Origin: Polymyxa betae A26-41
Taxonomy: Eukaryota; Protista; Endomyxa: Phytomyxea
Assembly (NCBI GenBank): GCA_003693705.1
Contig: RBZT01000269.1
Span: forward strand, 1-44,089
Length of the DNA stretch: 44,089 bases
Direction: 5' to 3'
In this document: in pieces, positions 444 to 41,505 of the stretch
How the letters are laid out: each line of letters opens with the position of its first letter
How positions within the stretch are numbered: the stretch's first letter is position 1
The notes under the pieces: model-generated
Database searches by the model: none
Told to the model about the DNA's origin: nothing
The model's input: only the letters and a program-made list of their open reading frames with translations
Translations under genes and position numbers: made by a program

Positions 444-1338
444 AACCCTAAACCCTAACCCGCGACTTAACCCTGTCATCAAAAAAAAAACCCTATCTGT
501 GATGGTACAACCCACCCTCTCACAGTAATTGCTACGGTACGCGATGGGTTAATCCCTTAGCAACACCGTAGAACCGTACCTTCCTGACCAAGTAACCCAC
601 TTGGTTGCATAGGGCCAACTGACTTAAAGACTATGGATCCACCCGCATGTTAGCCTAAAGTACAGTTGGGCATGGTACTGTCAGTACCCAAGGTTAAGTC
701 AAAGGTCCCATAAATGGTTTATGGGATTCTGAAGGTTAGGTATATATACCTTCCCGAAGATTATCCTTTTAGCCTCGAACTGTTGTATGTCTTCGGACAC
801 TAGTGCTGGCTATCAGGATAACCGCGACTTAACCCTGTCATCTAAAAAAAAAACCCTAACCCTAACCCACGGGCCTCATCATCTATCAGGAAGGTGGCGA
901 GTTCAACTCTCCATAATAACCCTAGGATTTTTCGGCTCAGTTGTGCCTCCGGACATAATGTTCGAAGGCCGCAGTAAGTCATTATGACTTGCGGGATAAT
1001 CCCGTATGCCAGATGCCGAATTTCTATACCGGCTTACAGTTTCCCTTCGGGGTCTCTCTACAGTCCGATGACGCCTCTAGCGCAACCCTTAGTTGGGTCC
1101 ATGAGGGCTCACAGGCTATTTATAGCACTGTGAGGCATGGTACTGTCCAGACCAAAATCCTTGAACTCCCACAATAGACAGGGCTTACCCCCCTAGGCTA
1201 TACTTCCTTTTAGATGTGTGCCGATGTATGTCAGTTGACACGGGCCTCATCATCTATCAGGAAGGTGGCGAGTTCAACTCTCCATACTAACCCTGTCATC
1301 TAAAAAAAAAACCCTAACCCTAAAAACCCTAACCCTAA
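444..1338 (+). mobile_element. Tandem chain of structured, oligo(A)-tailed non-coding units separated by telomeric repeats (putative non-autonomous retroelement family)
   Basis: TAACCCTGTCATC(T)-A10-CCCT occurs three times (ending near 494, 857, 1315). 868-915 is repeated at 1239-1286. The two unit bodies share collinear motifs and are dense in hairpins. Confidence 0.55.
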
Positions 1339-24366: not shown

Positions 24367-26048
24367 CTCAGCAATGCCAAGCGATTCGACGAATCGTCCA
24401 GAGCGGGAAGTCAGTCCGACCAATCCAGGCCGTCGTACACGCAGTTTCTTGTATGACTCATATCTTCTCGTAAACCCTAAACCCTAAGAAGAGCGGCATT
24501 CAGGTCATGGGTGGATGATTCTCTCATTCAATAATATTCCAGCTGCTTCTCTAAGGTGCCTATAGTGCTTCGCATTCGTGGCTTTTTATGTTCTAGAGGA
24601 TTGCTGCTCTGCTCTTGATTTGCATCTTTCAATGGATTCCGAGCTATAAGGATTCTGTCGTCTGAACCTTTATTATGGCTCTCCTGCTCAACAGATGTCA
24701 GGTCCTTAACCGTATTTGAAACAGTGCTGAAGGTAGCGGAACAAAGAACTTTGCATAAAGCGCAGTTGCCATTAGCGAAGAGCCTTCCTTGTCGGAAATG
24801 CTCCAAATCATGACGGACGAAACCGTTTCAACAGAACCCTAACCCTAACAATGGGTTGAAGAGATATATTGGGCAAGATTCTTGATTGTTATAAAGTATC
24901 CTACAAATAATAAGACAACAAACAATTCCGTGCCAGATCCTTCTACGACAAGAACAGGAAAACTTCGAAATCGAATGCGGACTGACATTTGACAGCGAAT
25001 CGGTGATTTGGCGAATATCTGTGATTAACCGAGAACGTAATATCGGGGTCCGAAACTCGCAATAATGGAAGGCTTGATCCCTTACGAAGGAATGTACTTG
25101 CATACAGAGTAAGATCTTTCAGAGCGTTATTGATTATTGGTCGTGATTACAATTCTGCATTTTGCTGTCGATTTTAGCCTTGAAGTTTATATGCAGTGCT
25201 GTTTTCTCTCGTTCGAATCCATTAAAAATTTCAATCCTGCGGCTGTTGCCATTTATTCTCCATCATTGAAATTCTCCATCATTGAAAACTGCTCTGTAGA
25301 CGCATCCAGATTTTCAATTGAGCCAACTCCGCAGAAGTTCCGCAGGGCCAATTCTAACGAGTGCAGAGGCAAAACCCTAAGCAGGTTTGCTCCGACTGTG
25401 ATTCGGAATTTGGCCAACAACGGTCCACCTACTCTACCGATTCAATAATGCGCAAAACAATTCTACATGCCGTAGAGAGTGCATCAATACGATTCCAACT
25501 GCTGATTTGCGACAAGACAGCCAGCGTCATATTCCATGATTATCGACGGCTGTCAAGAGAGTCAGCGGCAAACCGAACCTAGAAGATCCGATTAGCTTAG
25601 AAAGGTCCGGTCTCGCTAGGTACAGTGAAGTGTAGAGGCGCAGCATTCAAACCGTAATGAGGCTACTTTTTTCAAAGAAAATTCATAAAAATAAGGAAAC
25701 ATAAAAACTTAAGTTGATAAAAAGTGTTATTTTTGTTTAAATGTCCAAGTCTGCAGACAAACGAATCCCTTTTTCAGCAACACGCACCATGAACTGGAAT
25801 AGACAATTTCCCTCTCGGTTCGGTGATTCGTTTGAAACACGAATTTCACGATGGGAGCTCTAACAACAGATTGCCCCCAACAGAATTTTAAACAGAACAC
25901 CTTCTATGGGCGCTTTTATTCATGGTTTGTCCTACTGCGACGTTTTCTTGCAGAAACTATTTTATGACTTTTTATAACAAGTTTTCTTGCAAAAACTAAC
26001 AGTTGTAGGGCGTTGGATTTTAATATTGTTTTGGTCGCCCATTTGTAT

Positions 26049-40184: not shown

Positions 40185-41505
40185 ATGAATCGCGAAGCGG
40201 TGATCTGTCTGTTGTCGGCTCTGATGCTGGTGTCGGACCTGACATTGGCCGACTCCCATCACGACCATGATGATCATGGTGACGATCACGACCATGACGA
40301 CCATCATGATCACGACCATGATGACGGGTACGACCGACTTCTTTCGTTTATTTGCTTCTACAGACGACTCAGTTAAATTGTTGCCTGGTGCTGAAATTTT
40401 CAACTTTTTTTGCTCATTTGGCTGTGTTTCGATTTGAATGGTTTTACTGATGATGGCTGCTCTCAGGCATGAGCACGATCATGGTGATCACAGCGATCGT
40501 AAGTAGCGCCATACCCTCTCTATCTATCTTGCTAATTTGTATCATAGATCATGACGATCACTTCCACGGTAACATTACATTGCTCAAGTTTTCACTCTCA
40601 TTTGCTCCATCATTGAATGTTTTTTTTTTCATTTTTCGTTCATTTCCCATTTCAACTGTATCAATTTGTTCATCTTTCACACGCACTTTCGTAAAACTTA
40701 ATCAATAATCTGCTGTAGACAAAGGCGATCACAACGACGACGACGCTTCCAGTAAGTCCAGATGCGGTGATTGAACATTCACCTGCTAACCGATATGCCG
40801 TAGCGGACGCCGGGAATGATGCGGACCAACACGCGCACACCGACCAGGAGCAGGACGCCAACTTCGATATGCACGCCACACCAATGAGTTTCGGATGGGA
40901 TTTTCACTCATCGGTCACCACCGATACCGACACCGGTAACGCGCTACCCGTATGGGTTTGCTGGCGGCCGTACTGACCCACACCCCCTTGTCAGATATGA
41001 GCAACTATGAATGGCAGGATGCTCATAACGAACATGAGACCGACCATCATGACGATCATGGACACCATAGTGGACATGAACGCGATCATCATGATGATGA
41101 CGACGACCATCATCATCACGGTATGGAAACCCTAAAACCCTAACCACATTGCTGACATTTCTAATCCCCATGTTTTGTATATTTATTGCAACAATCGTCT
41201 GAAATTTTTTTCCTAAAAACCGTTTGTTGAAAAAGTTTCATTTTTGTTACAGCTGTTTAGTTGAAACGTCTCATCCCATTTTATCTTGATTTTCATTGAA
41301 TTGTTAGACTTTTTTCGCAAATTTTGTTGATAATCGCATTTGTTCTCTTGTCGGTTTTTGATAAAAATTATAATTTTCTGCTATAATTTGTGGTTGCATT
41401 TCCTGTTGAATTCGTTGGTGACGGAGCTGAATTTCAGGTGATGATGAGGGTCATCACCATTCTGATCATCACCATGACGACGATGACCACGATGATGATG
41501 ATTGA
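40185..41505 (+). CDS. Secreted His/Asp-rich protein (~184 aa). Exons 40185-40327, 40467-40498, 40548-40568, 40719-40751, 40804-40935, 40995-41120, 41438-41505
   Basis: Signal peptide MNREAVICLLSALMLVSDLTLA-DSHH. Six GT-AG introns join H/D-rich exons in frame to TGA at 41503-41505. Confidence 0.85.

Follow-up and report, generated by a model that had tools for sequence, protein, structure and literature searches.

The window analysed here is the first 44 kb (44,089 nucleotides) of one contig (C649) in the draft genome assembly of Polymyxa betae, a plasmodiophorid (Rhizaria) that parasitises beet roots, and its outermost part carries a chain in which two structured, A-tailed units, B and C, are joined to telomeric repeats and to shortened copies of their own 3' ends. 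The locus is the inner portion of a P. betae chromosome end; the forward strand, on which all the units discussed first are read, is the C-rich strand, and the end of the chromosome lies to the left. Unit B, a full copy of a structured RNA, occupies 495-853, with a run of ten A at 844-853, and unit C, likewise a full copy, occupies 923-1311, with its A10 at 1302-1311. Read from the inside outwards, the order is low-copy DNA, a telomere tract, C, truncated C, telomere, B, CCCTA, truncated B, telomere, a copy of another repeat (A), a telomere tract of 217 bp and a piece of a gypsy element.

A sequence-only reading of the window had proposed two diverged units sharing a series of motifs, each running from its A-tail into telomeric repeats and each preceded by a short copy of its own 3' end, and in these respects it was accurate. 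The motifs lie exactly where they had been placed: GGCATGGTACTGTC at 669 in B and 1134 in C, TCCTTTTAG at 764 and 1205, TGTATGTC at 784 and 1225, CTATCAGGA at 810 and 1254, and TAACCCTGTCATCT at 830 and 1288. Each A-run is exactly ten long and is followed directly by CCCTA, both full units terminate in one identical stretch of 14 nucleotides (nt) plus A10, and the window contains the tail motif TAACCCTGTCATCT-A(n) three times, shuffled sequence not at all. The short copy ahead of B covers 31 nt (460-490) at 97% identity; it has lost the 5' part and, apart from one missing T, keeps the A10 and the ~20 nt before it, and a CCCTA joint (491-495) leads from it to the full B. The one ahead of C covers 56 nt (868-923) at 98%, a single base off C, and it too has lost its 5' part; it stops at an internal TAACCCT, lacks GTCATCT-A10, and abuts the 5' end of C. 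Short telomere tracts lie before truncated B (18 nt, 444-461) and between B and truncated C (15 nt, 854-868), and a third (27 nt, 1312-1338) separates the chain from the chromosome-internal DNA. Only the extent of the chain had been drawn too short, since it continues outwards through the A copy, the 217-bp tract and the gypsy pol piece.

The gypsy piece, A, both copies of B and both copies of C lie in one orientation, with their 3' ends towards the centromere and C-strand repeats after each. The sense strand of every unit is therefore the C-rich strand, and the G-rich strand reads telomere repeats, then T10, then antisense RNA, which is the order to be expected if reverse transcription starts from a telomeric 3' end. 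What remains of B, C and A in their short copies is in each case a 3'-terminal piece, with telomere repeats on its 5' side, and truncated C begins, on its priming side, at the telomere-complementary TAACCCT, as expected if the end of the G strand primed there.

It could be objected that the chain is an artefact, short reads having fused unrelated telomere-adjacent pieces through the telomere repeats that they have in common. The genome was assembled with CLC from 2x250 bp Illumina reads and binned out of a metagenome-like sample, the 217-bp tract is near the read length, and the joins over this tract, and possibly over the 27-bp one, depend on short-read assembly. The joints between A, B and C, however, consist of 5-18 nt of telomere sequence, well below the read length, with unique sequence on either side, and B and C are each single, so that there is nothing to collapse or to swap. 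We consider an artefact of this kind very improbable.

A conserved RNA fold in units B and C

The two units are clearly related (z = 10.5 in local and 7.2 in global alignment), but the similarity reaches significance only over the 3' ~190-240 nt, where identity is 54%; the first ~85 nt of B and the first ~145 nt of C do not align (z = 1.6). Neither unit has an open reading frame (ORF) of more than 66 amino acids (aa), and stops are numerous. Both fold better than shuffled sequence, with z = -4.25 for B and -4.02 for C. That they are structured RNAs had been suggested together with a covariation check, and this check turned out in favour of the suggestion. RNAalifold, applied to an unsupervised MAFFT alignment of B 615-853 with C 1108-1311, gives a consensus of 36 pairs in which 72/72 cells are standard pairs and 11 pairs are compensated on both sides. 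When the 3' partners are slid by 1-3 columns, 32-44% of the cells pair and 0-1 pairs are compensated, and none of 500 partner shuffles reaches the observed values. A covariation test on two sequences has limited power; the slid controls are nevertheless clear. A hand-anchored alignment gives 13 compensated pairs out of 38 and, against column shuffles, z = -10 for the alifold energy, but it is biased towards structure and we rely on the MAFFT result instead.

The conserved 3' domain spans 615-843 in B and 1108-1301 in C, and comprises helices P0 to P3, with P1 closing it. P0 (B 615-624/659-669; C 1108-1117/1124-1134) has 10 pairs directly 5' of GGCAUGG, with an identical bulged A in both units and four pairs compensated between them. 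P1 (B 670-676/832-838; C 1135-1141/1290-1296), in which GGCAUGGU pairs with ACC(C)UGUC of the terminal motif, is invariant. P2 (B 764-774/808-818; C 1205-1215/1252-1262) pairs UCCUUUUAG-NN with NN-CUAUCAGGA, the variable positions being CC/GG in B and AU/AU in C, and its outer extension is further compensated in the hand-anchored alignment. P3 (B 788-791/796-799; C 1229-1232/1237-1240) pairs UGUC with GACA around a loop that is UUCG in B and AGUU in C. Each of the motifs given above is one strand of a conserved helix, and G-U pairs in P1 and elsewhere are consistent with the forward strand as the sense of the RNA. The preservation of 36/36 pairs, 11 of them compensated, thus indicates selection on the RNA fold. 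B and C are snapshots of two diverged functional RNAs, each selected for one common fold, and we infer from their sequences that they would be complementary DNA (cDNA) copies of two diverged members of one non-coding RNA family, ~350-380 nt in length.

This bears directly on the idea that no RNA intermediate was involved, and that B and C are old subtelomeric DNA repeats, or non-coding RNA genes in situ, duplicated and rearranged through recombination, or break-induced replication, from one interstitial telomere tract to another. Subtelomeric repeats split by telomere tracts are indeed common, the Y' elements of yeast being an example. The arrays of the MoTeR retroelements grow and shrink by break-induced replication (PMC7367193), and a deletion from one TAACCCT word to another could have produced the joint between truncated C and C. 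Duplicated DNA that decays neutrally, however, would not keep all the pairs intact with 11 compensatory ones among them, the exclusively 3'-terminal nature of the short copies speaks against shuffling, and the A10 tail, like the uniform orientation, is suggestive of cDNA. Even genes in situ would still require a retro or erosion step to account for the truncated copies. A DNA-level history is, in our view, improbable.

The tail, the telomeric repeats and telomerase

The conserved end of the RNA reads P1 helix-CUGUCA-UCU-A10-CCCUAA, the CUGUCA lying at the 3' base of P1, three nt ahead of the A-run. That the A10 is identical three times and is followed by CCCTA in phase argues for an A-run templated by the RNA and against a variable poly(A) tail; the RNA itself would then reach C-strand telomere sequence, either ending there or running into it. 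Besides its tail, it has two further telomere-complementary motifs, one of them the internal UAACCCU. The telomere repeats of P. betae are irregular, T2-6AG3 on the G strand or CCCT(A)n on the C strand, with n = 2, 3, 4, 5 and 6 seen 56, 29, 6, 2 and 1 times, respectively, and n = 1 once; in the sister genus Plasmodiophora, the telomere of P. brassicae is a uniform TTTTAGGG (PMC11191646). An A-run located 5' of CCCUAA in a telomerase template would yield just such a decaying series of T numbers, and a rare complete read-through would give exactly T10 followed by antisense B or C.

A comparable arrangement is known from telomerase RNAs. In Tetrahymena, the template boundary element and TERT-binding site is a CUGUCA located just 5' of the template, at the base of helix II on its 3' side, and C[U/C]GUCA stands at the corresponding place in the telomerase RNA of Leishmania (PMC4229120, PMC3424564); outside vertebrates, the boundary element is usually a helix next to the template (PMC4993307). 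P1, invariant and ending in CUGUCA, resembles this boundary helix of ciliates and kinetoplastids, a comparison made by motif and geometry only. There are also differences: P1 closes an arm of ~160 nt with several hairpins, not a simple hairpin, and the Rfam telomerase-RNA models have no match in B or C.

A multi-hairpin arm at the template boundary is more like the yeast arrangement. The template of a telomerase RNA is single-stranded and complementary to ~1.5 telomere repeats; here A10-CCCTAA follows each unit, and within a telomere this is indistinguishable from plain telomere DNA. As to the motif itself, the pattern CTGTCA..AACCCTAA has 17 other sites genome-wide, and some of the eight inspected look like intron starts (GTAAA-CCCTAA) or telobox stubs.

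One may therefore ask whether B and C are the 5' parts, from the 5' end to the template, of one or two genuine P. betae telomerase RNAs, the enzyme having overrun its boundary to the 5' end of the RNA, re-aligned and repeated the process. This would be a full-length version of the vertebrate insertions called TERC-ITS type B, in which the telomerase-RNA segment directly upstream of the template adjoins telomere repeats in the same orientation (PMC8537989). The geometry of T10 plus antisense B or C on the G strand is identical to theirs; the vertebrate examples are short fragments at internal break sites that match a known TERC gene, whereas B and C are 350-390 nt long, lie at a chromosome end, come in two forms and have no source gene found in the assembly. 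The position of CUGUCA ahead of the A-run and CCCUAA is like that of a boundary element, the 56:29:6:2:1 decay of the repeats is what variable copying into an A-run would give, and the use of one RNA twice in succession, first in full and then truncated, fits a stable enzyme-bound RNA.

There are also arguments against this scenario. B and C occur nowhere else in an assembly that is ~91% complete for core genes, so that a source gene is lacking, and the scenario requires two RNAs as different as B and C to be telomerase RNAs, neither of them represented elsewhere in the assembly. The copies of gypsy, A and another family (D, described below) in similar chains would be left unexplained, and the CUGUCA was noticed post hoc, with a probability of ~0.2-0.4% of falling by chance within a few nt of the A-run. 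The pseudoknot and 3' domains, for their part, would not occur in a read-through copy that starts at the template. On balance, genuine telomerase RNAs seem to us an unlikely source. The broader proposition that telomerase itself copied B and C, which covers both the first telomerase RNA(s) of Rhizaria in near-full-length read-through and parasitic RNAs that mimic its boundary helix, CUGUCA motif and template, is somewhat easier to accept, although we still find it doubtful. In the first case, the irregularity of the T2-6AG3 repeats would follow from a template with an A10 run; in the second, TERT would copy a parasitic RNA whole onto chromosome ends, and the RNA would be an enzyme-less retroelement living on telomerase. 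The sequence-only reading had listed capture of a telomerase-associated or viral RNA as the last of three options; the telomerase-associated part of it gains most of the three from the helix-CUGUCA-A-run-CCCUAA arrangement, while the viral part found no matching viral contigs.

The outer units and the same layout in other families

The outermost unit is a 3'-truncated piece of the pol gene of a Ty3/gypsy chromovirus (1-103, the C-terminal end of the coding region), within which the contig begins and which is joined at GTACGC to telomere repeats. It has fifteen genomic copies, and the 14 others run past GTACGC into the pol stop codon and the 3' region; a full pol of 1212 aa, with reverse transcriptase (RT), RNase H, integrase and chromo domains, lies on the reverse strand at L033:6197-9835. 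The family that supplied 1-103 (L014-L023, for example L014:1440-1500) has a conserved telomere-like tract of ~24 nt, AAAACCCTAAACCCTAAAACCCTA, in frame within pol (..KTLNPKTLP..) and ~60 nt upstream of the point at which the contig starts. Next comes the irregular C-strand tract of 217 bp (104-320), made of CCCT(A)2-5 and a few variant repeats. One of these, CCCCTACCATAACCC at 250-266, has a portion, CCATAACCCT, that resembles CCATA(A/C)TAACCCT of unit C, as though a C-like RNA had been copied a few nt beyond its internal TAACCCT; this is a single case and possibly due to chance. We also considered 104-320 as an intron, and rejected this: the left flank (gypsy pol) matches the other copies for 6 nt beyond the supposed GT, and the right flank is the 5'-truncated A.

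Unit A (320-443) copies the 3' end of a repeat and is itself 5'-truncated; it contains AATAAA-like signals and ends in ...CAGTTTATC, followed by AACCC in fixed phase. Four further copies lie outside the chain, all at contig ends (L009:1-181, L010:1501-1613 on the reverse strand, L011:1-102 and L012:1-85). The five are 98-100% identical and each ends in ...TTTATC and then fixed-phase AACCC(TAA..), which in the four outside copies gives way to unique DNA. The body of the repeat is absent from the assembly, these four copies running off the contig ends, and A may be the 3' end of an autonomous telomere element.

The same layout is found in family D, which ends in ...GCGTATCTCC and then fixed-phase CCCTA (3' end ...CCGCAGCGTATCTCC, with CCCTA(A..) in phase) at five sites, one at a telomeric contig end (C125, L139) and four internal (C74, C238, C875 and C964; L143-L146). 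At C125 it lies distal to the telomere tract; at C238 a 32-nt 3' fragment has telomere stubs on both flanks, like an internalised relic. The ends of C125 and C371 both carry non-telomeric DNA distal to a telomere tract of 120-180 bp, and those of C97 and C355 are plain telomeres. The piece at C371 (12166-12298, reverse strand; L142) is single-copy, 133 nt long and ends in ...TTATCTCCTACTCT, distal to a 180-bp tract, and is a candidate retro-unit. Neither A nor D nor this end piece has significant similarity to B or C, and we rejected them as relatives; A and D have none to each other either. What recurs across the families is the pattern of a 5'-truncated RNA 3' end that has telomere repeats upstream of it and a C-strand tag, in phase, downstream.

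Inward of the chain, the DNA from 1339 is low-copy, with partial matches to a few other contigs. Telomere stubs in the opposite (G-strand) orientation occur at 1735-1755 and 2777-2790, 400 and 1440 nt inside the chain, and a diverged low-copy repeat at 1912-2270 has 69-71% identity with sites on C850 and C591. A patchwork of older insertions, in both orientations, may make up the subtelomere. Telomere-like stubs of 2-3 units are very common, with 163 three-unit matches genome-wide; in the window they occur at 24475, 24837, 26519 and 41130 and, on the reverse strand, at 1739 and 2777. Several stand at intron starts, as does GTATGGAAACCCTAAAACCCTAA at 41120-41145, and short stubs may act in regulation as telobox-type elements or be scars left by telomerase-assisted repair. 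The layout of A and D hints that RNA-templated repair of ends or breaks has widely shaped this genome, and the hundreds of short telomere-like stubs may fit into one picture with it.

Searches, known systems and the origin of the chain

The searches covered 27,085,814 bases in 1001 contigs. The published draft (1,001 contigs, 27,085,946 bp, from Illumina 2x250 reads) kept contigs of at least 1 kb and then a subset chosen on coverage, GC and composition (PMC6328671). It is ~91% complete for core genes and covers ~92% of the estimated genome size. The eukaryotic small-subunit ribosomal RNA model gives a single sub-threshold 44-bit fragment (C853:63313-63588) in the whole assembly, and the ribosomal DNA (rDNA) unit was apparently filtered out along with other high-coverage sequence. 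Since contigs below 1 kb and high-coverage contigs were dropped, absence from the assembly is weak evidence, above all for high-copy sequence.

With this reservation, the sequence-only reading's claim of a wider family found no backing: BLAST-type queries with B and C against the whole genome return nothing beyond the two units and their fragments, three sites, all at this locus, match the tail pattern when one mismatch is allowed, and a covariance model of the 3' domain (R1) at E<=10 finds only B and C. By the condition that this reading had itself set, a lack of further copies, the family claim fails, although the condition is a weak one in an assembly filtered in this way. The first two of the identities that it had offered fared no better. 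Rfam gives nothing near threshold on either strand, neither a telomerase-RNA family nor the head of a short interspersed element (SINE). A SINE is further contradicted by the lack of a tRNA-, 7SL- or 5S-type head (ARAGORN, Rfam), of dispersed copies and of the tail of a partner LINE, and a retrozyme by the lack of a hammerhead or other ribozyme family in B and C at E<=10. Longer copies carrying an RT ORF with the same 3' end, which would have made B and C the 3' untranslated regions of a telomere-targeting retroelement, are absent from the 27-Mb assembly, and so is any element with this tail. Four further candidates were rejected. Sub-threshold Rfam matches to archaeal C/D-box RNAs are confined to the minus strand of C and not conserved in B; a hammerhead seen by eye in B (CUGAAGG...CGAAG) has an invalid core and is absent from C; a rolling-circle RNA is incompatible with joints of which that of B has A10-CCCTA and that of C skips GTCATCT-A10, no single circle fitting both; and with the 'coremin' motif of BNYVV (beet necrotic yellow vein virus), B shares only a GUC-tetraloop-GAC hairpin of opposite sense.

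The possible enzymes were also sought. TERT and LINE-type RTs are present in the P. betae genome, whose >150 RT matches are mostly Ty3/gypsy with a few LINE-1/R2-like ones. Among those sampled, no Penelope-like RT was recognised, the RT-only elements were LINE-1/R2-like, and the LINE loci had no telomere repeats nearby.

These results leave room for a different source, namely RNAs from outside the assembled chromosomes (two segments or satellites of an RNA replicon with a common, conserved 3' replication structure, or transcripts of filtered DNA, rDNA spacers for example) that a LINE-type RT captured a single time, by its endonuclease-independent activity, at a deprotected chromosome end. Absence from the assembly is what such an origin predicts; multipartite RNA replicons typically combine 5' parts that differ with a 3' structure that is conserved and covaries and with identical termini; P. 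betae is a vector of polyadenylated benyviruses (PMC6328671); LINE-type RTs are at hand; and the rDNA is missing from the assembly. A scan of IMG/VR with two motifs and one gapped motif gave only chance-level matches, though, the tail query found one chance match among JGI metagenome contigs, in an AT-rich bacterial gene, the 14-mer motifs have no occurrence in the literature text scanned, and two ORFs spanning B and C have no match among the encoding contigs. The in-phase CCCTA tail and the two further telomere-complementary motifs look adapted to telomeres rather than accidental, and two diverged variants are unexpected of rDNA spacers, which are homogenised within a genome. Endonuclease-independent LINE-1 insertion at dysfunctional telomeres, reportedly described by Morrish et al. 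in 2007, is said to use the telomeric 3' end as a primer on an A-tailed RNA and to leave a (TTAGGG)n-poly(T)-cDNA joint; the length of poly(A) varies there, and here it is exactly A10 three times, in phase with the telomere. We give the capture of a stray RNA little chance.

The explanation that we favour, tentatively and with a probability of about 0.4, is the telomere-primed reverse transcription of a telomere-restricted, non-autonomous family of retro-RNAs, the G-rich strand being extended by turns, with repeats added by telomerase and then RNAs copied onto it. The RNA would bear a genetically fixed A10-CCCUAA tail and the internal UAACCCU, either of which could anneal to the 3' end of the telomeric G strand and prime cDNA synthesis. 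An RT acting in trans, for which telomerase, a LINE-type RT or an unassembled telomere element are candidates, would recognise the conserved 3' domain; synthesis would reach the 5' end of the RNA or halt early, and telomerase would re-cap the end before the cycle starts over. Master copies would reside in telomeres outside this assembly, plausibly in the unassembled or filtered fraction. What the sequence shows directly is the chain, its truncations, the fixed tail and the conserved structure; the RNA intermediate, the priming step, the enzyme and the further copies are deduced from it. Alternating telomerase addition and reverse transcription is what the sequence-only reading had envisaged; the same-orientation stitched chain and the expected pattern are there, while an RNA family beyond the two copies was not found.

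Several points weigh against this explanation. There are two copies in 27 Mb, at a single locus and in spite of their deep divergence (54%), where an active family should leave more, and four other telomere-bearing contig ends lack B/C-like sequence. The genome has no autonomous element with the B/C tail, B and C show neither an internal Pol III promoter nor a tRNA or 7SL head in the Rfam and ARAGORN scans, and the short-read joins over the 217-bp and perhaps the 27-bp tract could be mis-assembled. Telomere-primed copying of a retro-RNA nevertheless explains more than copying of a telomerase RNA does: it covers the existence of two subfamilies, the selected 3' domain, which would be the module for enzyme recognition and annealing, the absence of internal copies and the kinship of layout with A and D. 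It is supported by one locus, and includes the possibility that TERT was used through mimicry of telomerase RNA.

Similar arrays are known elsewhere. Gladyshev and Arkhipova reportedly found in 2007 that Penelope-like elements without endonuclease are arranged head to tail, as chains of 5'-truncated copies with telomere repeats in between. Such elements (Athena, Coprina) occupy chromosome ends and attach to G-overhangs through reverse-complement telomere tags at the 3' end of their RNA (PMC8557442). The B/C chain resembles theirs in being terminal, in one orientation, with 5'-truncated copies among telomere repeats, and in the telomere-complementary tags UAACCCU and A10 plus in-phase CCCTA; it differs in having no ORF or RT and no hammerhead beside the tag, a fixed A10 standing there instead. 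The MoTeR elements of Magnaporthe form head-to-tail arrays with telomere tracts from half a repeat upwards, truncated copies that were re-capped and internal relics, and MoTeR2, which lacks an RT, depends on MoTeR1 (PMC7367193). The B/C chain is like the arrays of MoTeR1/MoTeR2, and of FoTeR in Fusarium, in form, and the MoTeR relics resemble families A and D. The termini of MoTeR2, however, are common to an autonomous partner, and none is seen for B and C; the MoTeR elements have 5' telomere-like repeats, are 1.7-5 kb long and are not known as compact covarying RNAs. In contrast to TRAS/SART as well as MoTeR/FoTeR, B and C have neither an RT/endonuclease ORF nor termini that match such an element. 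The chain thus works like the arrays of Penelope-like elements, MoTeR and TERC-ITS and yet cannot be assigned to any of them, since B and C have no RT ORF or hammerhead as in Penelope-like elements, no autonomous partner with the same termini as in MoTeR or SINEs, and no known telomerase-RNA gene as in TERC-ITS.

Telomere-associated retro-arrays are known from rotifers, fungi and insects, and insertions derived from telomerase RNA from vertebrates. We know of no description of either in Rhizaria, of none among them that is a compact non-coding RNA clearly selected for its structure, and of no telomerase RNA for this lineage. If B and C do derive from telomerase RNA, the locus would provide a candidate sequence for the lineage and a natural case of complete boundary bypass. 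If they are mimics, telomerase would be open to parasitism as an engine of retrotransposition, which would bear on the question of the relationship between telomerase and Penelope-like elements.

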